Shown here: in pieces, positions 12,386-34,300 of the stretch
Position numbering within the stretch: position 1 is the first letter of the stretch
How the letters are laid out: each line of letters opens with the position of its first letter
Sequence record: NC_003214.2
DNA length: 40,900 nt
Strand: one strand, 5' to 3'
The notes under the pieces: model-generated
Databases searched by the model: none
What the model saw: the letters and a program-made list of their open reading frames with translations, nothing else
What the model was told of the DNA's origin: nothing
Position numbers and translations under genes: made by a program

Positions 12386-13417
12386 GTGTTGACCATGGAG
12401 AACAGAGGGATAAGGATAGCTGAAAGGTATGGCTATAAGTTAGTTCCGCATTTTTTTAACTTATTTTTTATTCTAGACAATTGGAATAATATACCTATTG
12501 GGAAAACAATTGTGAGTCTTTACAATTATCGTCAAAAAGAATTTGTTGAAATATTCAAAAAATATGACGAAAACATAGGTATAGCTACTGTTAATTACAC
12601 TAATGTTCATGTGATAAAAAACCATAACGAATTCGAGATTATTGTTTACAATGTTGATAGCATTCATGACCATAAAAGTAAGTATCTTCTAATGTTGTTC
12701 TTAGGTAATAAGTTTATTTTCAGAAGAGGAAAAGTGTATTTGTATGACATAGTTATCAGAAATCTAATTAAATCGCATGACCTCCAGTTTAAAATCAAAA
12801 AGATAAACTTAATCAGGGTAAGGTCACTTTTTGGCAATAATATCGTATCTTATTATCCTAAGAAAGAGCTTATAAGAAACTCAATTATTCTAGGGAAAGG
12901 GGCTAACGATAGCATATACGTAATTACTGAGATCAATAACAAGAGAGTTTTATACTATGTCAAAAGAATTAGGAAAATCCCTAGATTAAATAGGATAGCT
13001 CTGAAAAATCACAAGTTGCAATATCAATTTTTCAAAATGTTGTTACAAAAAGGAATACTGCAGAAAGAAACACTATTTCCTATCGTACCCTTGAGGTCGT
13101 TGTTTACATCGTTAAGGATTTCTGGAACTTCTGAATGGAAATTTAGCCCGCTGTATGTGTTTAATGGAAGACTAGTAAATGCTAACATTTATGCAAGAGC
13201 AATGAACCCTGTGTTAATCGATTATGATTACGATGAAACCAATCAGGTTTTGCTAAAATTTGCAGATGAGAGTTATCATTCGGTGCTTTGTGGACTTGAT
13301 TACAAAAACATGTTATGGTGTATAACGTTACCAGCGATTACAATGTGGTGGAGAATAAAGGAAGTATACAAATATGTTTATGACCTGGACAACCAAACCA
13401 AAGTTTTTAACTACTAA
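12386..13417 (+). CDS. Basic hypothetical protein (343 aa, GTG start; ATG 12395 alternative)
   Basis: Long ORF 4 nt after the RQGD gene. Confidence 0.9.
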   Translation: MLTMENRGIRIAERYGYKLVPHFFNLFFILDNWNNIPIGKTIVSLYNYRQKEFVEIFKKYDENIGIATVNYTNVHVIKNHNEFEIIVYNVDSIHDHKSKYLLMLFLGNKFIFRRGKVYLYDIVIRNLIKSHDLQFKIKKINLIRVRSLFGNNIVSYYPKKELIRNSIILGKGANDSIYVITEINNKRVLYYVKRIRKIPRLNRIALKNHKLQYQFFKMLLQKGILQKETLFPIVPLRSLFTSLRISGTSEWKFSPLYVFNGRLVNANIYARAMNPVLIDYDYDETNQVLLKFADESYHSVLCGLDYKNMLWCITLPAITMWWRIKEVYKYVYDLDNQTKVFNY

Positions 13418-13432
13418 TTGAGACAAAAAAAG

Positions 13433-13714
13433 CTATTTGAATAAGCTTATAATTATCTCATATTTTGTTTTCCCTAATCGTTGTGCTAATTCTTCTAATC
13501 TTTCGTTTTCCTGATCATAAAAAATTATGTTGATAACCTTGGGTATTAAATCATTTTTTATGTTCATGTCATGTGATCTTGTAGAGTTATATATCTTTAC
13601 TTGATATTTTTTCTCTAATTCTTTCATTACACATTCCCTATACGATTTATATTCTTTACACATATTAACTAGTTTATAGAAGTATTTTTTTGATATGCGT
13701 ATTGTGTAGATCAT
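13433..13714 (-). CDS. Tandem RHH-type transcription regulator (93 aa)
   Basis: Two strand-helix-helix units: IYTIRISKKYFYKL... and INIIFYDQENERLEELAQRLGKTKYEIIISL. Confidence 0.7.
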   Translation of the reverse strand: MIYTIRISKKYFYKLVNMCKEYKSYRECVMKELEKKYQVKIYNSTRSHDMNIKNDLIPKVINIIFYDQENERLEELAQRLGKTKYEIIISLFK

Positions 13715-13798
13715 TTTCTTTCACATATACTTTCTCGTGATTTAATTTATATATTTATTTGAGAAAGATTTATATAGTTCTTTTGTATATGCTATCAT

Positions 13799-14155
13799 AT
13801 GCTGTATATTCTCAATTCCGCAACCTTGCCCTTAAAACCAGGTAAAGAATATGTAATACACGCAAAAGAACTAACGATAGAGGAGGCAAAGGAACTATTA
13901 GAGAATGAGAGATTCATTTCGGCAGTAGGACACGAGGCTACAGCGAAAATGTTGACAAATATTTTCGACGTCGAGATACCAATGAATAGAATCCAAATCT
14001 TTTTGGATGATGGCGATAAACTGCTATCAATAATCTTAAAGACAAGGCTTGAGGAAGGTAAAGTTATAAAGACTGTAGAGGAATTGGAGCAAATCGGATA
14101 TAATATATGGTTGTTCGAAGTCGTCACTTATGAACATAATGTCAAATATGAGTAA
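13799..14155 (+). CDS. acrIII-1: AcrIII-1 viral ring nuclease (DUF1874 / STIV B116 / AFV3-109 family, 118 aa)
   Basis: LYILNS, ISAVGHEATA (catalytic His), MNRIQI, RLEEGKVI motifs; leaderless under GAGAAAGATTTATATA (13761-13776). Confidence 0.93.
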   Translation: MLYILNSATLPLKPGKEYVIHAKELTIEEAKELLENERFISAVGHEATAKMLTNIFDVEIPMNRIQIFLDDGDKLLSIILKTRLEEGKVIKTVEELEQIGYNIWLFEVVTYEHNVKYE

Positions 14156-14164
14156 AGTGGGAAA

Positions 14165-14431
14165 ATGGAGGAATTTATCATTAAAATAGCTGGAACTAAG
14201 GGGATATCAAATTTTAAATCATACCATTTTAGTATCATCTCGAATTATGAAAATTTTTTTAATTTTATATTGCCTAAAGACGTTAAAGATGTCCTCGTAG
14301 TCCTACCTTTTGACGAGGAAAAAACTAAAACAATTAAGCACGCGATAACTAATGCCAGAAGTAACGTATCGGTTACTATAATGTATAGTGGAAAGATAAG
14401 GGACGAAATGATAATTGGCTGGAGAACTTAA
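14165..14431 (+). CDS. Hypothetical protein (88 aa), co-transcribed with acrIII-1
   Basis: 9 nt after the acrIII-1 stop; GTGGG SD. Confidence 0.85.
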   Translation: MEEFIIKIAGTKGISNFKSYHFSIISNYENFFNFILPKDVKDVLVVLPFDEEKTKTIKHAITNARSNVSVTIMYSGKIRDEMIIGWRT

Positions 14432-23208: not shown

Positions 23209-23874
23209 ATGGTGAGAGTAGTTACATTCTTTGGCAATTCGACATACCTTGATGAAGTCGTACAAAAAAACAAAGTAACTGACGTATACATAGATAGAAG
23301 TTATACATATAAGTTAGGAAGTAAATGGCAAGGAGTTCCAGATTCATTACTTCCTGAAGACACCATTTTTCTAAATCCGTCAGATATTGAAGAACTTTCA
23401 GAAAAACTTGCATCATACGGTGTACACTCAGTCATATCAGACACAGGTATAAAATACTCGGGTGTAGAGCGAGAAGTAATGAATAGACGATTGCGTATAG
23501 CGAAAATGATTACCACCATACTAAATGATATATACGATGATATACTGTTTGTCGATAGTGACGTGGTACTTAATGAAAACGTATTTAAGGAAATCTCATC
23601 TTCTACGTCGCCTATGCCAATGTCAATATGCATACCAGCATTAATGAAACCGTCGACGTTTGTCGTATTCATTTTTTGCTATTCGACAAACTTCTACTTA
23701 CCGTTATCTCTTCATGATAAGTTATATGATGCAATGAAAATGTATATCGACAGACAGATATACACTACGTATCCAGTAGACTTATACATACATAACTCCG
23801 TACTTAATACACGTAAAATAATACTTAACAGAGGTGTATGTCATTATATAAGAGGTAATGTATACTGTATATAA
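23209..23874 (+). CDS. Probable GT-A (GT2-like) glycosyltransferase (221 aa)
   Basis: [12 protein letters not shown] (DxD) and C-terminal CHY. Confidence 0.65.
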
Positions 23875-23922
23875 CTACGTTGTAGTAACAGTTATTAATG
23901 GAAATGATAATTTGTATTATGT

Positions 23923-24240
23923 ATGAAAATAGTAACATACGTAACTACATCTAATAAGAATGTGAAACCAAAATGGGCTGACTTAGTATTCAGCATACCA
24001 CAGGTGGATTTAAAAACAGCATTGGTAACGGTAGCTCATATTAACGATGATGTATTATTACTAAGAAATGACGTAAATGTGTTAAACAAGGACGTAATAG
24101 TACGGTTTTTCAAGTCATTTAAAACATCAGCAGTTGTAAAGTATGGCAACGAAGTGATAGGGTATTATTTGACACGTGCTGATAAATCAAGTCGTATGAC
24201 GCCAACACTAACGGTGACGCATTACGCTCTTAAAGTCTGA
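23923..24240 (+). CDS. Hypothetical protein (105 aa), degenerate GT-A-like paralog of 23209-23874
   Basis: [14 protein letters not shown] vs [13 protein letters not shown]; VTHY vs VCHY. Confidence 0.7.
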
Positions 24241-25131
24241 TAATATTTTTTCTTCTATGTTAGGCATCTCAAACTCTTTACTTTTTTCTAATGCCTTTGC
24301 ACTTAATTCATCATAGCAACTAGTCTTTATGCATTCACGTGCTTCTTGTAACGCATTACGTACATCGCTATCACGTATGAGGTAGTTATCCATCTTACCA
24401 TACGATGTTTCTTCAATTATTACATCATATGGGTCAATTGGTATACCTACAGCGTATTCCTTAAACGCGAACGCATTAACGTATACAGCAGGCGTTCCAA
24501 CTGACATTGATTCCATTAATGGTAACCCAAATCCCTCATTCTTAGATAGAGATAAATAGAAATACGACTTATGTAATAGCCTATATTTCTCTCGTTCATC
24601 AAGAGTATAACTACGCATGTCGAAGTCTCCTACATTAGATATTACTAGTGTTGAATTTCTCATATTAAGTTGCCGTAAAATATCTAGAGTATACTTTACA
24701 CGTTTACGTATAGCAGTACCGTCGCCCGGTTCACTAGCTAATACAGTAAATAGATACTCTTTTTTTACATTTGATGCACGTTCATCATAAGCGACTTGGT
24801 TAAATGGTGGTCGTAGTACACCATCTACATGTATTGTACCGTTTAACAATTTCTTAACGTAATGCGACGTAACATATACTTTTGCACGACGCATATCACA
24901 ACCATGTTCTACGTAATACGGTGAATCTATCCATACTATCATGGGTCTATCCTTGTATATGCAACTATATGTCTCGATAAAACTCTTTGCGTCTGTTATA
25001 TTGAAATATGAAGGTGACAATAATGATTGTATTAGTATATATTTCTTAAACCTCTGTTTGACATTATTAAAAATAACAAAAAACCCACATTTAACGCATG
25101 GTACGTGCGTTATTATTTCACGTAATAACAT
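24208..25131 (-). CDS. GT-B (GT4) glycosyltransferase; ATG 25131
   Basis: [18 protein letters not shown]. Confidence 0.92.
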
Positions 25132-25169
25132 ACACAAAATTTATTGTACCGGTAGTTAAATTATTAATT

Positions 25170-25520
25170 ATGTCTGCAATTGCCGGTGTTATAGCTGGTG
25201 CATTTGGTGGAGGAATAGGTGGAGTAGGTGACGCCATAGGTACCATAATTGGAGATTTGGAAAGAGCGATAGCAAGATTTGGTGGATCTATAGTAAATGC
25301 ATTTAAGACAGTAATTGACAAAATATTAACATTAGCAGTGAGAATAGGTAGAATAATTGAGAAGTACTTTAGAATAGCCGTACATTACATAGTACTATTC
25401 CTACGTCTTGCTTATAGATACATGTATTCATTTTACACTGAATTTCAAAAAGATCCGTGGCGATCACTACAATTTGTAGGTAGTATGGCTATATTACTTA
25501 ATAACTCATTGTTTCCATGA
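25170..25520 (+). CDS. Amphipathic/hydrophobic protein (116 aa; ATG 25170 preferred over 25098)
   Basis: G-rich hydrophobic N-terminus, amphipathic helices; TATA at ~25136-25145. Confidence 0.8.
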   Translation: MSAIAGVIAGAFGGGIGGVGDAIGTIIGDLERAIARFGGSIVNAFKTVIDKILTLAVRIGRIIEKYFRIAVHYIVLFLRLAYRYMYSFYTEFQKDPWRSLQFVGSMAILLNNSLFP

Positions 25521-25530
25521 GGTGATGTAA

Positions 25531-25923
25531 ATGTCTGAACCAAATCAACTAACAAGAGATCAAATGACGGAAATAGTGAAAAACATAGTAGTATCCGTTG
25601 ACGTAAACGAAAACGCGGTAGTGATATCAGCAAAGAGATTATTGTCATACTTCCTGAAGAATGTGGAAGGTCTTGAAAAGATTCTTAAAGTGGATGTAGA
25701 CAAAGATAACAGTATAGTAGTTTACGCGTCAGTGAAACCAACAAATCCAAATCTGAAGTCAATAATATTAAAGGTAGCTGTAAAAGAATCAGCTTTTAAC
25801 CTAAGTCAGTTTAAACATGAAATTATTAAAGCAGGGGATGACGTGAACATAAAGATATATGTACAGCAGAACGAGAGCAGAACATTAGCCAAGAACAGTA
25901 GTGAAGAAGAGGTCGACTTTTAA
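25531..25923 (+). CDS. Hypothetical protein (130 aa)
   Basis: GAGGTGA SD. Confidence 0.88.
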   Translation: MSEPNQLTRDQMTEIVKNIVVSVDVNENAVVISAKRLLSYFLKNVEGLEKILKVDVDKDNSIVVYASVKPTNPNLKSIILKVAVKESAFNLSQFKHEIIKAGDDVNIKIYVQQNESRTLAKNSSEEEVDF

Positions 25924-26621
25924 TGTCATATACAACACCTACCTATACTGCGTCAGTATCAAATGATATACTGCGTTATATGATGGCTTACGCAACAGGT
26001 AACGATGGTTGTATACAGTCAATGTCAGCATTATTTCAGTCATCAGGTGAAAGTATAATAGCATATAATGTGAGTGCATCTTCCACAACACAGGCTGGAT
26101 TCTTCTTTCAACTTCAAAATGTGCCACAAGGAATTGGAGTACAAATAGTATTTTTTTCCACTACAATACCTCAAAACACGTTTTTCATTGATCTTAGGTT
26201 TACTACGACACAAGGTAATACATATCAACTGGCACAAGTCAACACATTGCCACCAAATACGAATTATGCATTAGTGATAATTGTATCACTTACAATCACC
26301 GTACAACCTGCATCAAATGTAAATATATCACCTCTCTTACAAGCATTTACATCATTCGCTTCCAATCAATGTGCAACAGCACAACCACCATCGTTGTCAT
26401 ATACAGGAAATGGATTTACTGTATTCTATGAAAACACTTATACAAGTGGAATTACATTTAATGCTATACTTATTGCTCAAAATACATTAACTTCATCAAA
26501 TACAATACAAATAACAGCTACTATAAACGGTAATGTAGTAGCTACAGCTACTATATCTACACCAGCACTCGGATACGCGTACTTTTTATTCACATTAACA
26601 TTAGTATTTACAAGTGAGTGA
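25923..26621 (+). CDS. S/T/N/Q-rich beta protein, putative virion terminal structure (232 aa)
   Basis: TAATG coupling; member of a seven-gene paralog family. Confidence 0.88.
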   Translation: MSYTTPTYTASVSNDILRYMMAYATGNDGCIQSMSALFQSSGESIIAYNVSASSTTQAGFFFQLQNVPQGIGVQIVFFSTTIPQNTFFIDLRFTTTQGNTYQLAQVNTLPPNTNYALVIIVSLTITVQPASNVNISPLLQAFTSFASNQCATAQPPSLSYTGNGFTVFYENTYTSGITFNAILIAQNTLTSSNTIQITATINGNVVATATISTPALGYAYFLFTLTLVFTSE

Positions 26622-27616
26622 AGTTGAAACTTGTGGAAATATCTTCTATTATACGTGGTGGAGCAAACATTTACGTCAACAATAAACTCGTAGCTACAAC
26701 TCATAATAATGTAACACCATCGTTTATACTATCCCTCATAAAGTCAATTATCGGAGTGTCGGCAATATATGGCGGGTATTTCGAAATGCCATCTACAGCT
26801 ACTGCAAAGTTGTTTTACAAGAATACACCAGTCACGTCAGCCGTGTTATCTCATACATCGTTCACAGAAGAGACCATATCAGGGTATGAGCACACTCGAA
26901 TCATATTTACATTTAGTGACGCATCTCGTACAAAGTACTCGTTTGACTCATTGCAATTGTGGACAGCGTCAACACATGCATTGTTATCACATGTAAGTGA
27001 TATAGCATTGACATCACCACTGAAGAAGAACCCACAAGATGTCGTTCAAATTGATTGGTGGATAGAAATGGAATCAGGTCAGCCATTTGCTAATATATTG
27101 TCATACTTACAACAACAACAAGCGACATACTGTACGTCGTCATGCACCATACCGTCAGTTGTGCCAAACATGGTATATGGGTACAGCGTATTCAATGCGT
27201 TTTTCATCTTACTTGCACTACCTAATGTCATACAAGTTGCAAGAGATATCAAAACGCCACTTACAAACTATCTTGTAGAGGGTCTTACACTTGCTAGCCA
27301 GGTGAAACCACAGGGAATAACATCTGTAATATGTTATGATGTTTGCAATTGCCAAATGACAACAAACCCTCAACAGGGTACTGTTAGTGAGTTCATAGGT
27401 GATAATTATGTATACGTAGCGTTTAACTTCAATAATCCATGTCCATCATCAGAATACGTTGTGCCAATATCGACTCTTGATTTAGGCAATGGGTATGAAT
27501 TACAGTTCGCTGTAGCTGGTGTTCCGTCTAACGGCACTGGTGCGTCAGCATTACTAATAAAAATACCATACGGGAAAGCTACACTTAAGAACTTGTTTAC
27601 TCATCAGGGTGAGTAA
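26618..27616 (+). CDS. S/T/C-rich beta protein, putative virion terminal structure (332 aa, GTG)
   Basis: GTGA overlap; YSFDSLQLW...KNPQDVVQIDWWIE family motif. Confidence 0.88.
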   Translation: MKLKLVEISSIIRGGANIYVNNKLVATTHNNVTPSFILSLIKSIIGVSAIYGGYFEMPSTATAKLFYKNTPVTSAVLSHTSFTEETISGYEHTRIIFTFSDASRTKYSFDSLQLWTASTHALLSHVSDIALTSPLKKNPQDVVQIDWWIEMESGQPFANILSYLQQQQATYCTSSCTIPSVVPNMVYGYSVFNAFFILLALPNVIQVARDIKTPLTNYLVEGLTLASQVKPQGITSVICYDVCNCQMTTNPQQGTVSEFIGDNYVYVAFNFNNPCPSSEYVVPISTLDLGNGYELQFAVAGVPSNGTGASALLIKIPYGKATLKNLFTHQGE

Positions 27617-27617
27617 T

Positions 27618-28661
27618 ATGTCAAGTACTTCAACATCCGTCACACAACCAGCATATACAGAAGCGTTCATGTCAGCTATTGCTACATCAGTAACTGGCGT
27701 AAACGTAAGCCAATACCCATCACCCTCAGGCTATCATGTTTATTTGTCAAGCCAGACTGGTATCGTCGACAACACGACCGACGTTAGTGTGTATAATGTG
27801 TCCGACACATACCAGAATAATAATGAAGTTACATCAGTTACATTTATAGCAATATTTAAGAACTTAAGTAGTTACACATTTAGCGAGATTTTATTCTACA
27901 CACAGGTTAACGGACAAGATTTCATGCAAGTAGCCCAATTCATACCCTCGTCTGCCATACAAAAATCGTCTGGTTACGCATTAGTAATTATGATTACGCT
28001 CTCAATAGCCACACCTGTATATATTATAGATGCCATACAAGATGTGCAACAATTATGTACAAATTATTGTATAAACGTAAACTGTAACGCAGTAGGCGGT
28101 AACATAGAAACCTCGTATTTACCATTTTCACTATTTAATCTTGTCTTTTTGTATCTATTAGGTGTAAACACCAACACAGTAGAACAATCACCAAGTACCC
28201 AACAAACAGCTTCTGAATATGCTAACTGTATAAATAGTTGTGTGCAATATTGTGGTACTAATACAGGACTTGAATGTATAGCATGTCTATCTAGTTGTCG
28301 TACGTATTTACTTGAAAATCCATTATTCACATTTCTGTTAGCGAATAATATACAAAATGTGATGGAGCTATTACCACAAGGTATAAACACTATATATACT
28401 GTTAACGTATGCAGTGGTAAAGTAGCAACACTCACACCTCAAAATTTTCAGAATAACTTAAATGTTGTTTCACAGTCAGAAATACAATATACCATACAGT
28501 TCTACTTACCAGGTACTAACGAATTATTTAATGCATTACAGATAATGATATCTACATTAAACACAAACTATAACTATAGTCTTGGTGTATTATATTTCAC
28601 AGGTGTCCCATTGCCTTCCGGAGAAACCTTTATACTTGAGGTGACCGTGAGTGAAAGTTAA
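27618..28661 (+). CDS. Cys-rich beta protein, putative virion terminal structure (347 aa; ATG 27618)
   Basis: GGGTGA SD; YTFSEILFY...KSSGYALVIMITLSI; Cys cluster. Confidence 0.88.
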   Translation: MSSTSTSVTQPAYTEAFMSAIATSVTGVNVSQYPSPSGYHVYLSSQTGIVDNTTDVSVYNVSDTYQNNNEVTSVTFIAIFKNLSSYTFSEILFYTQVNGQDFMQVAQFIPSSAIQKSSGYALVIMITLSIATPVYIIDAIQDVQQLCTNYCINVNCNAVGGNIETSYLPFSLFNLVFLYLLGVNTNTVEQSPSTQQTASEYANCINSCVQYCGTNTGLECIACLSSCRTYLLENPLFTFLLANNIQNVMELLPQGINTIYTVNVCSGKVATLTPQNFQNNLNVVSQSEIQYTIQFYLPGTNELFNALQIMISTLNTNYNYSLGVLYFTGVPLPSGETFILEVTVSES

Positions 28662-29577
28662 AGTTAGGAGTTACTTTACAATTAGTGTTGAAGATAGAAC
28701 TAAACGACTACACAATACCTTGTCAGCTGAATATATATATTTAATTCAAGGTTTATTAACACAAGGTCAGTCATACAAAGCACCATATAGTGGTTATACT
28801 GTCGCTTTTACACCCCCATCGAACATGTACTTTGTATTTCTAAGCAATGGTGTCGTAGTTGCACGTTTCCCTGCAAAATTGTTATCGTATAATGAGAATA
28901 TAAATACTGTAAATGCTTCACAATGTCAAAATAATTTGACATCCTGTAATCTGAATAACCTATTGTTTAGTCTAGAGTATAGTTCCACTGATGAAACAAA
29001 TGATACATATACATTTGATGAAGTACAACTTTGGGCTGACAACGAGTACATGATAGCGTATGCCAGTGTAGGCACAACCACGAAGAACGTTAACACATTT
29101 GTACGTGTGACGTGGGATGCTATAGTGACAATAGAGTCTGATAACGTACTATATATACCCGGTTGTACAGACTTTTCACTTATGTTGAACTTACAGTTAC
29201 AGTTGAATAATTACCAACCCTATCTATGTTTGAACTTACCGTACATAATCGTCGCACTTACGCTTGTTCCATATTCACTTGTTCCGCAAAATACGTTCCT
29301 GTACACTCAGTTGTCTACGTTGCTAAAGATACTAAATATTTCTAGTACGCAACAATTACAATTACAAGGAGTGCAATATTATGTGGTAGGAAATACGGTA
29401 TATCCAATATCGCAACCTTATATAATTATTAATACTCAACAACCAAATACTATAACGCTATTCTTGTTATACGGTATCAATAATAACTACTTTATCTATA
29501 CAACTTCGTTATCCGTTACGATACAGTATTTTAAGTTATATATTCCTACGCTTACAATTAATATGGTAGAACAGTAA
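28651..29577 (+). CDS. Beta protein, putative virion terminal structure (308 aa, GTG)
   Basis: AGGTGA SD; YTFDEVQLW...[11 protein letters not shown]. Confidence 0.88.
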
Positions 29578-31352
29578 TGTCATTCCTACTTAACTTGGGT
29601 CAAGCGTTCTTCTCGGGACTGTCATCGATCGCAACTGGTGTCACATCAGACGTTACCAGTGTAGCCAATGGTATAAATTATGCATTTAACGTATTAGCGA
29701 ACTTTCTACAAAAATTACCTAGTGAAATTGCAACTTTCTTCCAGAGCATTCCAGGTGCGTTAATTGGGTTTGCACATACATTTGGTACTTACATATGGGA
29801 TGGCATGCAAAGGATTGCTAGTGGATTTACTGCAATAATGGCACCTATAGAACGTGGTCTTGAAACACTCGGGACAACAGTAATAAATGCGTTAACTGTT
29901 GTGTGGAATGACATAAAAGCGTTTGCCAGTGCAATATACAACTCCATCGTATCAATGATAAACAACATAGTGTCGTTCGTACAACCTTTTATAAATGATT
30001 TTAAAAATGCTATTAGCTTCGCCTATAACTTCTTGCTTAACGTCATCAATGACGTATACAGTGCGTTCACTATAATATCTAATTTCTTCCTTGATCTACC
30101 TACGTTCTTCCAGAACGCGTCGAACTACTTAAATTCACTGTTCACTGACCCAGGTAACCAACCCAACTTACTGACTATGGTACCTAACTTGGTCGCCAGT
30201 GAGGTATCACGTATTGCTGGTGCGTTTCCTGATGTGATAGCATATAATACGTTCATGGAAGTGCTACCAAAGATGGTGTCAGGTATTGCCAGTTCACCAA
30301 TTTTCGGTAATACTGTTAAGGGCATGTTTGCAAAGGCATTACTAATGGCTGGTTCACCAATATTATCTGCGTTATTATCAGAATTGACAAAGGCGTTGAT
30401 GCAATCATTATTCACATCTACTCAGACCACGCAAACTACCCAGAGACCATCTCAACCACAAATACAACCTCCAACTGCACCTTCTACACAATTACAACAG
30501 CGTAGTACACAACAAACTAGTCTAAGTGACTTGCAGAACTTACAAACACAACAATTGACTCCAACTCAAATTGAAGTACAACTTGAAAGACCTAATGTAA
30601 CTGGCGTGTTCACACAAGATGTAATAGGAATGGGGACTGCTAGCGGTGGCACGGCTAAACTAGTGACAGGATATATCAACTTCCAGAACAGTATTAAACA
30701 GTTTGAAGATGTGTTTAACATAACTGCTAGTTTCTTCATGGAGTTAATACAATCACTACAAACTGAGTTTAGTCAAGACATGGCTGTTAATGTATCACTA
30801 ACACTACTTGAGAACATATATCAAGTAAGTCAATCAATAGAAATAATACCATCAGTTGATGCTACAACAATTATTCTACCACCTGGTATATCATTATGTA
30901 ATCCATCACAAGCACCGTCGCCTTCTGAATCAACAAGTACGTCGACAAATTCAATAGATGTAACAACTACTGTAGATGTTACAGAAGAGCTATGCATACC
31001 ACCATACGACTTACTAGCTGATGGACTAACGACACAGTTCGCCGTTATAGCTCTTCTACATTCCAACATTTCTGATGTAATGCTGGCAATAACGCAACTC
31101 ATATATGGTATAACTTTCTCTAATTTAATATCTGACATACTATCTGCAACAACACAGTTAATGTATTCGATAACATCCAACATATCTACGTCAGACACTG
31201 TATCCGTAAGTGCGTCATTCACACCATCTCCACCGCCATCTGAGACATACACATATTATGTACCTATTGACATCGCCGTTACGTATACGATTCAAGTAGC
31301 ATCGTCAACAACTTATAGTGGTGCTCTAAGTTATACTGTGAGTACATCGTGA
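29577..31352 (+). CDS. Large amphipathic-helical plus P/Q/S/T-rich protein (591 aa), probable virion/membrane component
   Basis: TAATG coupling; tape-measure-like helical repeats in the N-terminal third. Confidence 0.9.
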
Positions 31353-31421
31353 GAAAAACCCACATTAGACTATCCAACTTAAGTGTTAAACTTTTTATTT
31401 TCTAATGCATAAATTAATGTA

Positions 31422-31796
31422 ATGAGTCAACCATCTAATAGTGGTGGTGGAGCTAGTAAGGGTATCGTAAAAATATTAATACTAGCAATGTTGGCAATAG
31501 GGATAATAGGACTACCTGTTGGCTTATACGAAATCGGGACATTAATCGCTACGCATATGGCGGTCGGTGACATTGAGAACGGTTATGCATACGGTGGTCT
31601 GATGAGTATTATATACAACGCAACGCATATATCACAATATCAACAGCTATCTCAAATACTTCCTGCTACTGGTGTAACTATGGGTACCCAAGATATTACC
31701 ACAATACAGATATTCCTATTATTGCTGGGTCTGTTCTTGGATGCACCGTTAGCATATATGACATATAATATTTATAGACATCTGGAAGACGAGTAA
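31422..31796 (+). CDS. Membrane protein with two TM segments (124 aa)
   Basis: [18 protein letters not shown] and [12 protein letters not shown]... Confidence 0.88.
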
Positions 31797-31886
31797 CTTT
31801 TTAAAAAGATATATATTTTTTTGGAATTAGGGATGATAGAAGAATAGCATAAAATTTATTCTACCATAACAAAGATTGTAATTAAG

Positions 31887-32525
31887 ATGTCCTCAAATCT
31901 TGCGTACCTCGTATACGAAAGTATGACATCAGGTCTTAGTAGCGTATCATTCTATGTTCTTGATACAAGCAATAATCAACATCCATTTCATGTCTTAGTA
32001 ACATCTGAAAACACATATTACTACTTTGACAGTAGCGAATCCGTATACATAGCTACGTCATTCAACATATCTGTTAATGGCAACGTCATACTTACTGTTA
32101 GTCTGAATAACTTACAAAAAACAGGCAATATGACGCTAATAGTAGTTGTGACGCTCGATATAGGAACATCATTACCAGGTAATCTAGGGACATACGTCAT
32201 ACAAGCAATTCAAGCATTGTTTGCCGGGGTACTCATAAACCTTGGCTGTTCTGCAACAGCATATTACACTATCGTTAATGAACAAACAGGGTCATCGTCA
32301 ACGGGCTCCACCGGTCTATCATTTAGTCTGACTAATGACTCTCAGTTCGTCGCATCAGGTAGTATATCATATTCACAATATGAAGTAGTTAATATCACAC
32401 AAATAATAATATCATGTTCAACAATTAATGTTAAGGAAAACATGATTACAAATACATTAACAAGTAGTGAATGCACATCATCTTCAGGCTGTACGTACAC
32501 AATAACCATTACGTTTACAAGTTAG
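31887..32525 (+). CDS. S/T-rich beta protein of the paralog family (212 aa)
   Basis: KTGNMTLIVVVTLDI family motif. Confidence 0.88.
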   Translation: MSSNLAYLVYESMTSGLSSVSFYVLDTSNNQHPFHVLVTSENTYYYFDSSESVYIATSFNISVNGNVILTVSLNNLQKTGNMTLIVVVTLDIGTSLPGNLGTYVIQAIQALFAGVLINLGCSATAYYTIVNEQTGSSSTGSTGLSFSLTNDSQFVASGSISYSQYEVVNITQIIISCSTINVKENMITNTLTSSECTSSSGCTYTITITFTS

Positions 32526-32557
32526 ATATATATTCCACTTTTTCATGATTGTATAAT

Positions 32558-32704
32558 ATGAAAAAGAACCTAAAAGCTAATGTAAAAGCTGATGTGAAAG
32601 TATACCTTGTCCCACGTGACCAGTTACAACTTGATAACAGTAAACCTATAAAACTTGATGACAAATACTTAGTATATGACAGTACTAAGACGAAAAAAAG
32701 GTGA
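32558..32704 (+). CDS. Small basic ORF (48 aa) [48 protein letters not shown], not in the ORF track
   Basis: Fills the operon gap; its stop lies within the AGGTGA SD of the next gene. Confidence 0.7.
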
Positions 32705-32709
32705 GTGGC

Positions 32710-33747
32710 ATGAAAAAGAATATTGTTGTACAGAATGAACTTGTACAAGTGAAAGGTAGAGTAAAAGCAATTACTATTAAGAAAGAAGATTTTAATGAGT
32801 TTCTTAAACTTACTACGCTTAGGGTATTTAACAAATCATATGATGTATTGATGCCACCTATAGATGACATGAAAAAGAATACGATAGATTTAAATGGTTT
32901 AACAATAGTTACACAAAATTACCTTAGCTTACTTTTATATCAATCTGGTGCTACAAGTCCATCTACAACAGCTCAAATTAACCTTAGTACATCATCAGGT
33001 TCGCCTGTCACATTGCAGTACTCAAGTAAAATTAATTCAAATTCACAAGGTTTAATGGTACTTTTACAAATATTTGAAGCAAATGGGAACTTAACATTTC
33101 AATATTATTTCATAGGATTTGATACCACAAATAGTTCATACAGTGCAACACAAGCCGAGCTTTATGCATCAGCATGGGTAAATACTTCAAATACAGGTAA
33201 TTATTGTGCAAGTGTAAACCCCGTTACAATGTATACCAATCTTGTACGCATTGCATATACTAACATTTCAATAACAAAATCAGCGACAGAATATTTGTTC
33301 ATGGTATGGTTGATAGAATTTGAAAATGTACCATCTTACGCTCCATTTGCTGTACCTATCTTTGCAAATGCGTTGAATCTGGCACCTATTGCAGAATCTA
33401 CAGCATGTGGTTCCCCACCTCCTTCTTCAGTTACGATCTATTTTTATAATGGTAACTGTAATTTCACATGTGGCGGTAATTGTCCAAATGGTGGATTAAG
33501 CTCATTCGTTGAATACATACAAAATAACGCCTTAACAGTTGAGTTTCCATTACAGGCTCCTATTCAAGGTGGTGCATCAAATCCAGAAGTATTTATATGT
33601 ACCACTTTAAATTTTACTTATACGAATAGTACTTCAGTTATTACCCAAATATCAGGTAATGAATCAACTACAGTCACACCACCAGTAAGCGGTGCCACAT
33701 TCTATGTAGCAATTGTTACAATTTCAATAACATACACAGTGTCGTAA
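32710..33747 (+). CDS. Beta protein of the paralog family (345 aa; ATG 32710)
   Basis: AGGTGA SD; YSATQAELY...KSATEYLFMVWLIEF. Confidence 0.88.
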   Translation: MKKNIVVQNELVQVKGRVKAITIKKEDFNEFLKLTTLRVFNKSYDVLMPPIDDMKKNTIDLNGLTIVTQNYLSLLLYQSGATSPSTTAQINLSTSSGSPVTLQYSSKINSNSQGLMVLLQIFEANGNLTFQYYFIGFDTTNSSYSATQAELYASAWVNTSNTGNYCASVNPVTMYTNLVRIAYTNISITKSATEYLFMVWLIEFENVPSYAPFAVPIFANALNLAPIAESTACGSPPPSSVTIYFYNGNCNFTCGGNCPNGGLSSFVEYIQNNALTVEFPLQAPIQGGASNPEVFICTTLNFTYTNSTSVITQISGNESTTVTPPVSGATFYVAIVTISITYTVS

Positions 33748-33748
33748 A

Positions 33749-34300
33749 ATGATAAACATAGAAAGAGTATTATATATTGTGTATTCATCATTACTTAATA
33801 ATATACCAACGTATGGTGCCATAGCAAATATAAACGGCTCGCCAATAAACCTTCAGGCGAAATATAGTAACAGCACGTTAACGTTACAAGGCGATATAAT
33901 AATTCAAGCAACAACAAACACATTAACTATAGAAATATACATAGGCAACTACCCAATAGACTCAATTTCATTAAACGTTGCATTAAGTCCTGGTACATAT
34001 ACACTCGTCTATACGCTAACAATAAATGACAGCACTGGTATAATAAACAACGCGTTTGGATATGCTGTCACTAACCAACTCAAAAGCGTGAGTATATCAA
34101 CAAACTCAACATTATACACAATCTCTTATACACAGAATATGTTAACATTCTACTTGGAATATACGTCATACCCAACCACAGTATCGATAACTGTAACATT
34201 TACACTGACTAACGGGAGTACTGTGACTGGTAGTTATAGCAATTCAATACAAGGCACAACTTTATATGGAATCGTGATACCTGTTACTTTTGAGGTGTAA
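33749..34300 (+). CDS. T/S/N-rich beta protein of the paralog family (183 aa)
   Basis: 1-nt gap to the upstream gene; SPGTYTLVYTLTI. Confidence 0.88.
   Translation: MINIERVLYIVYSSLLNNIPTYGAIANINGSPINLQAKYSNSTLTLQGDIIIQATTNTLTIEIYIGNYPIDSISLNVALSPGTYTLVYTLTINDSTGIINNAFGYAVTNQLKSVSISTNSTLYTISYTQNMLTFYLEYTSYPTTVSITVTFTLTNGSTVTGSYSNSIQGTTLYGIVIPVTFEV

Follow-up and report, generated by a model that had tools for sequence, protein, structure and literature searches.

A lipothrixvirus-specific family of two-domain beta proteins in a conserved gene module of Sulfolobus islandicus filamentous virus: candidate components of the virion ends

Results

A family of two-domain proteins in a co-directional gene chain

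The 40,900-bp window analysed here, that is, the whole stretch of DNA to which all SIFV coordinates refer, is the complete genome of the betalipothrixvirus Sulfolobus islandicus filamentous virus (SIFV; AF440571.2, 100% identity). Its genes gp49 to gp62 form a single co-directional chain, in which a sequence-only reading had proposed seven paralogous two-domain beta proteins resembling tail-fibre or baseplate domains of phages. All seven open reading frames (ORFs) lie where that reading had placed them, on the plus strand: gp51 (ORF232; 25923..26621; 232 aa), a candidate divergent member with two invariant cysteines; gp53 (ORF332; 26618..27616; 332 aa), the reference member of the family; its paralogues gp54 (ORF347; 27609..28661; 350 aa) and gp55 (ORF308; 28651..29577; 308 aa), with ten and four invariant cysteines, respectively; gp58 (ORF212; 31887..32525; 212 aa), a probable member with four conserved cysteines; gp60 (ORF345; 32701..33747; 348 aa), a member with an N-terminal extension, four conserved cysteines and two variable ones; and gp61 (ORF183; 33749..34300; 183 aa), a probable member devoid of cysteine. 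The genes gp56, gp57 and gp59 are interspersed among them, with the tape-measure-like gp56 (29577..31352, +; 591 aa) forming the conserved centre of the module.

A Y(T/S)(F/A)..h.(L/F)(W/Y) motif, on which the proposed paralogy had partly been based, is found a single time in each of gp53, gp54, gp55 and gp60 and in no other of the window's 145 ORFs; on residue shuffles, the same regular expression gave a mean of 0.022 matches. The seven proteins are also alike in composition (30–42% T/S/N/Q and 3–12% charged residues). BLASTP comparisons within SIFV were merely suggestive (gp53 with gp55, E 0.006; gp54 with gp58, E 0.002). Orthologues of gp53 and gp56 were collected by tblastn from SIFV2, SFV1, SBFV1-3, SSRV2/SSFV3, AFV2 and AFV7, a metagenome scan with the gp56 alignment added 29 SIFV-like contigs of 45–73% identity, and IMG/VR scans gave further loci, so that the orthologue family of each protein comprised 6 to 22 distinct sequences; that of gp51 was raised by a word search to 41 proteins, 38 of which entered its profile.

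In all-pair HHalign comparisons of profiles built from orthologues only, the N-terminal half of gp53 matched those of gp55 (98%, E 1e-13) and gp54 (96%, E 6e-9), and the N-terminal half of gp55 matched that of gp60 (81%, E 1e-5), while the remaining pairs stayed at background, the highest being the N-terminal halves of gp54 and gp58 with 12.7%. The domain shared by gp53, gp54, gp55 and gp60 spans about 180 residues. A hidden Markov model (HMM) made from gp53 N-domains alone retrieved in its first pass the orthologues of gp55 (E 5e-11) and gp54 (E 2e-9) together with three groups of AFV paralogues; the second round added proteins of the AFV ORF351 type and a gp60 orthologue (E 8e-7), and the third SIFV gp60 itself (E 2e-8). 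Profile comparison further identified AFV ORF351 (98%) and SFV1 ORF42-364 (94%) as orthologues of gp60 in other genera. These four proteins, each combining a significant N-domain profile match with the Tyr...Lys signature strands described below, are thus certain paralogues at the level of sequence. Judged by HHalign, HMM and superfamily-profile scores against controls, the seven proposed paralogues resolve into these four firm members and two probable ones, gp58 and gp61; direct sequence comparison does not support gp51.

Two confident models share one architecture

The AlphaFold2 model of gp53 (46-sequence alignment; predicted local distance difference test score, pLDDT, 86; predicted template modelling score 0.86) consists of a beta domain with one helix (residues 11-153), a helical hinge (160-223) containing Cys172 and Cys176, and a C-terminal beta sandwich (230-317). 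That of gp58 (18 sequences; pLDDT 92.9) has an N-terminal helix (5-13), a beta domain (20-89), a hinge helix (98-112) and a sandwich of the immunoglobulin (Ig) or carbohydrate-binding-module type (121-211). The succession of beta domain, helical hinge and beta sandwich is therefore common to both high-confidence models, and the hinge, which had been ascribed to every one of the seven proteins, is present in the two that were modelled. The Tyr motif coincides with the final three N-domain strands, where the invariant Tyr starts one strand, the invariant Lys ends the next, and a hydrophobic strand then leads into the hinge (Tyr107 and Lys137 in gp53; Tyr54 and Lys78 in gp58). The further claim that each protein contains a second, similar half did not survive: HHalign self-comparisons of profiles and comparisons of N- with C-terminal domains revealed no similarity between the halves in any of the proteins, and in structure comparisons the two halves of gp53 and gp58 resemble different folds. 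Membrane-like segments are absent from all seven, bar a hydrophobic beta region in gp54, and present in gp49 and gp57.

Conserved cysteines number two in gp51, six in gp53, ten in gp54, four each in gp55, gp58 and gp60, and none in gp61. These even numbers are kept almost completely across orthologues of 45–80% identity. The Cys-rich inserts pointed out by the sequence-only reading are real, including the string quoted from gp54, and in gp53 and gp54 these stretches lie largely within the hinge region; nine of the ten invariant cysteines of gp54 lie between residues 150 and 230. Such even, conserved counts fit the formation of disulfide pairs. Proteins of Sulfolobales and their viruses commonly contain such pairs, cytoplasmic proteins included. 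A complex prediction for gp53 with gp55 scored 0.00, which is evidence neither for nor against their association.

Borderline members

For gp51, gp58 and gp61, the sequence-only reading had described a related version of the motif; the strings are present, but as signs of homology they are weak. The iterated gp53 N-domain HMM found gp58 at the border of significance (E 0.0017) and never retrieved gp51 or gp61. Against a merged superfamily profile, for which five control families of the same module gave 0.0–0.5%, gp58 and its orthologues scored 67% (E 5e-5), AFV ORF249 92%, gp61 and its orthologues 26% (E 7e-4), and gp51 only 1–4%, even with the 38-sequence profile. Profile comparisons identified SFV1 ORF43-230 as the orthologue of gp58 (100%) and the alphalipothrixvirus protein SFV1 ORF41-219 as that of gp61 (98%), and the latter matched the gp53 N-domain with 83% (E 9e-6). 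The best HHalign match of gp51, to gp58, reached 8% (E 0.004), so that its profile gives no significant link to the superfamily; its gene, however, occupies the position of the AFV ORF255-type proteins, which are themselves members by sequence. The ESM Atlas model of gp51 was poor (pLDDT 0.41) and uninformative.

Folds were also compared with the viral models in BFVD, although shared composition may inflate the resulting E-values. The gp53 model retrieved gp54 (E 1e-15, template modelling (TM) score 0.64), gp60 (E 6e-12), gp55 (E 6e-9), the gp61 orthologue SFV1-219 (E 2e-8, TM 0.57), gp58 (E 9e-6) and gp51 (Q914I1; E 9.4e-5), as well as paralogues from AFV and SBFV and several phage models bearing the name tail fiber. 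The gp58 model yielded 17 matches at E<=1e-3, of which 16 were lipothrixvirus module proteins, including gp60, gp53, gp54, gp51 (E 4.7e-5, TM 0.52/0.48) and gp61 (E 7e-4); this specificity is striking. The modest global TM-scores are to be expected of hinged two-domain proteins.

The family is confined to lipothrixviruses and varies among them

All relatives came from sequences resembling alpha-, beta- or deltalipothrixviruses. When 1.84 billion representative proteins were searched with a profile, only 57 clusters were returned, 56 of them of lipothrixvirus-like length; the exception, a 2888-aa match (P0028), was discarded as a repeat or low-complexity artefact. Homologues are encoded in the same module beside a tape-measure-like gene in AFV7 (ORF255/288/279/351/249), AFV2 (ORF246/289/286a/338/258) and SFV1 (ORF48-329/49-295/42-364/43-230/41-219), where they are conserved hypothetical proteins without a described function. 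Pfam did not reproduce the label 'putative lectin' that a depositor had given to SBFV3 ORF30-438 and the related AFV proteins. Unlike that of SIFV, the AFV modules begin with the tape-measure-like gene and hold a different number of paralogues, and in the alphalipothrixviruses the module is both split and inverted when compared with that of SIFV: genes resembling gp61 and gp60 (ORF41-219 and ORF42-364 in SFV1) are found on the opposite strand, upstream of the remaining module (SFV1 12500-14253, −; SBFV2 23768-25512, −). Gene content and order thus indicate that the module is conserved in rearranged form across alpha-, beta- and deltalipothrixviruses.

In a tree of 89 N-domains, good support was obtained for a clade uniting gp60 with AFV ORF351 and an SSRV2 protein, for another of gp53 and the 329-aa alphalipothrixvirus proteins, for separate clades of gp55 and gp54, and for three AFV groups. 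Its deep branches were not resolved. Judged by this tree, the duplications are old and not recent tandem copies. The full SIFV set occurs in one lineage of SIFV-like contigs, to which gp54 is also restricted; in a second lineage, gp53 and gp55 are the only members, located upstream of a shorter gp56, and gp51, gp54 and gp58–gp61 are missing; a third encodes a single paralogue of 367 aa. The one member found in every SIFV-like contig is gp55. In the reduced metagenomic modules (L041, L042, L044, L045, L047-L050 and L052), the shorter gp56 measures 430-490 aa and is followed by three ORFs without a SIFV homologue (116, 93 and about 295 aa). One IMG/VR contig (IMGVR_UViG_3300017469_000064, 1-9533) is a head-to-head palindrome in which gp55-gp56-gp58-gp59-gp60 are followed by their own reverse complement, an arrangement due either to misassembly or to a hairpin-type join.

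A tape-measure-like protein and a resemblance to baseplate parts

The N-terminal ~270 residues of gp56 match many tape-measure families of PHROGs (best E 6.6e-8), and tblastn links the protein to siphovirus tape-measure genes (E 4e-6). This property is not new, since the annotation table of SFV1 already lists the orthologue under COG5412 (P=99.1; supplement of PMC6105669). In AFV-type viruses, the tape-measure-like gene is followed directly by ORF351 (a member), a gene for a 412-aa protein and ORF249 (a member), an order reminiscent of a tape measure followed by tail-tip genes.

Among solved structures, the gp53 and gp58 models align best to residues 376-954 and 404-950, respectively, of the 953-residue chain BD in the tail model of HFTV1 (9H4P). 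From its length and the description in PMC12494034, this chain is provisionally taken to be the baseplate hub gp44, a protein that docks the tape measure and bears projecting distal domains with a predicted carbohydrate-binding part (PMC12494034). The fold of what would be its distal projecting region is found in the gp53 and gp58 models. Both alignments cover only this distal part; unlike chain BD, the SIFV proteins have no gp27/MuSo2 43-kDa-like hub domain at the N-terminus and are one third as long, with no detectable sequence similarity to it, and SIFV is an enveloped filamentous virus without a tail tube. The next chain is the arm segment of phage 812 (score 6.1), a repeated unit that reinforces the baseplate arms; this protein and Listeria phage A511 gp105 (BW3) are T4 gp8-like and carry the Pfam domain PF25691 (BW3TFN), phage 812 being a Staphylococcus phage. 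A shape search of the Atlas returned two Taleaviricota clusters, one archaeal cluster and Uroviricota clusters with PF25691 and PF23140, the Uroviricota ones with TM-scores of 0.58-0.62 by target over about 140 residues.

Sequence searches gave no counterpart to these matches. Pfam returned nothing above noise for any module protein, and neither PF25691 nor the tail-collar N-terminal domain (DUF3751) matched any of the seven at E<=1; PHROGs contained only self or singleton families for the seven, and a search of PDB sequences with the family profile gave no real match. Because no sequence method bridges to tailed viruses, the resemblance to baseplate parts is structural only. The tail-collar kinship that the sequence-only reading had suggested receives no backing: the 'tail collar fiber' entries of BFVD matched gp58 only at E about 0.06 and TM about 0.24, and all that the family has in common with DUF3751 fibre proteins is a beta-rich N-terminal module in a fibre-associated protein.

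Other genes of the module

The first gene of the module, gp49 (25098..25520, +), encodes a small hydrophobic protein with one transmembrane-like stretch (residues 13-41) and has homologues in every lipothrixvirus genus examined (SFV1, SBFV2, SBFV3, AFV2, AFV7, SSRV2 and metagenomic loci). It is followed by gp50 (25531..25923, +), which specifies a charged 130-aa protein conserved among SIFV-like viruses and weakly similar to AFV ORF132 (HHalign probability 40%). The 124-aa product of gp57 (31422..31796, +) has two transmembrane-like stretches; its gene lies between gp56 and gp58 in SIFV and SIFV2 and upstream of gp49 in metagenomic relatives (L029, L036, L044-L050), and has therefore moved within the module. 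The small, charged 51-aa protein of gp59 (32549..32704, +) is conserved in several SIFV-like contigs. Annotated antisense to the junction of gp51 and gp53, SIFV0052 (26477-26704, −) is probably not a gene, because its reading frame is open solely in the closest relatives and is truncated and unannotated in SIFV2.

Neighbouring genes of the chain overlap by 1-11 nucleotides or are separated by gaps of a few bases, with overlaps of 1-16 nucleotides when counted between stop and start codons, and GAGGTGA-like motifs precede several internal start codons (gp50, gp55, gp62) by 5-10 nucleotides. Co-directionality, short overlaps or gaps, and these motifs fit polycistronic expression; the overlaps together with the motifs suggest translational coupling along gp49–gp62. 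Glycosyltransferase genes flank the module. Nearly all products of the chain are named hypothetical in GenBank. Of the more specific names, 'Ig heavy chain-related' for gp60 was rejected as a functional label for want of a family match, and 'putative outer membrane protein' for gp58 was rejected since the protein has no family match, no membrane segment and a soluble two-domain model. The C-domain of that AlphaFold2 model is merely an Ig-like sandwich.

Discussion

The terminal structures of lipothrixviruses are diverse, comprising one to six filaments, claws or brushes, and the six-fibre mop of SIFV binds the host cell wall. In the literature searched, with most subscription journals outside its scope, we found no gene assigned to these structures, nor any description of the superfamily, its two-domain architecture or its resemblance to the HFTV1 tail chain and arm-segment proteins; the genome sequence and the ORFs themselves have been publicly available for a long time. 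We hold, with moderate confidence, that SIFV 25.1-34.3 kb is a coupled structural module centred on gp56, in which a lipothrixvirus-specific superfamily of two-domain proteins builds the virion ends. What the sequence-only reading had proposed, a disulfide-stabilised hetero-oligomeric end structure arising by serial duplication, is thus supported in part. Our data establish paralogy, the architecture of two members, cysteine conservation, taxonomic restriction and structural resemblance to baseplate parts of tailed viruses; location at the virion ends, hetero-assembly, disulfide bonding and a function in adsorption are what we infer.

Under this interpretation, the superfamily proteins, gp56 and the membrane proteins gp49 and gp57 would assemble in the cytoplasm into the tapered neck and the mop at each end of the virion. 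The N-domains might serve as stacking or adaptor units, much like baseplate arm segments, with the C-terminal sandwiches pointing outwards to contact the host. Such a role is suggested by structural analogues that are all peripheral parts of baseplates or tail tips, by a tape-measure-like gene in the same operon, by the solubility, paired cysteines and T/S/N-richness of the proteins in a module flanked by glycosyltransferase genes, and by the restriction of the family to lipothrixviruses, among which it varies. As the end structures vary too, they could plausibly have their genetic basis in the varying complement of paralogues, and differences in paralogue number between lineages may underlie their differing terminal structures.

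How far the family extends, and where its proteins reside, can each be read in another way. If only gp53, gp54, gp55 and gp60 were paralogues, the remaining three would be unrelated small beta proteins, alike in composition and generic beta-sandwich shape. The low direct HHalign values (0.6% for gp61, and the background-level figures for gp51 and the gp54–gp58 pair), the global TM-scores of only 0.28-0.52 between the gp58 model and BFVD models, and the poor model of gp51 weigh against the wider family. We nevertheless consider so narrow a family improbable: gp58 exceeds all controls against the superfamily profile, has the invariant Tyr and Lys on topologically equivalent strands, shares its top three PDB matches, found independently, with gp53, and matches almost exclusively module proteins among all viral BFVD models. 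With its signature residues, profile score and architecture, gp58 is a probable member, as is gp61 by way of its alphalipothrixvirus orthologue; gp51, occupying the position of a sequence-proven member in AFV viruses and matching the family in predicted fold, is a possible one. The family could also be real and yet act elsewhere than at the virion ends, either inside the cell, as a scaffold for envelopment or in nucleocapsid capping, or as a decoration of the whole envelope. Several observations count against the proposed terminal location: the eight proteins that band-based mass spectrometry identified in SFV1 virions include no module homologue, though two bands were unresolved mixtures; SIFV acquires its envelope within the cell (cited in PMC10791045); and glycosyltransferase genes flank the module. 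The peripheral nature of the structural analogues, the tape-measure-like protein at the centre of the module, the lack of membrane segments in the seven proteins, and the parallel variation of paralogue content and terminal structures between lineages speak for the virion ends, and we give an intracellular or envelope-wide role a low probability.

The likeness to baseplate parts may itself be misleading. That it reflects a common arrangement of beta-sheets, an analogy silent on both function and ancestry, is a serious possibility, if one towards which we do not quite incline. A bolder proposal, which we put forward as tentative and rather doubtful, is that the end module of lipothrixviruses and the tail-tip module of tailed viruses, with its tape measure, hub extension and arm segments, are homologous, through an old acquisition by Adnaviria or shared inheritance; the former would then combine a tape-measure-like protein with a set of proteins that resemble arm segments and the distal part of the hub.

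An adsorption apparatus made from diversified paralogues, as the superfamily would be, is of a known kind among viruses. Terminal structures define the genera of lipothrixviruses and mediate adsorption, and our analysis names for them a concrete, conserved set of candidate genes, which form one protein family that expands and contracts. It also provides high-confidence models of two members and, unexpectedly, ties them structurally to baseplate components of tailed viruses, among them an archaeal virus. The gene content of lipothrixvirus termini thereby becomes directly testable. Were this tie to reflect homology, the adsorption machineries of two virus realms would be connected and, should this extend to the module as a whole, an enveloped filamentous archaeal virus would make its adsorption organelle of parts related to the baseplate of Caudoviricetes.

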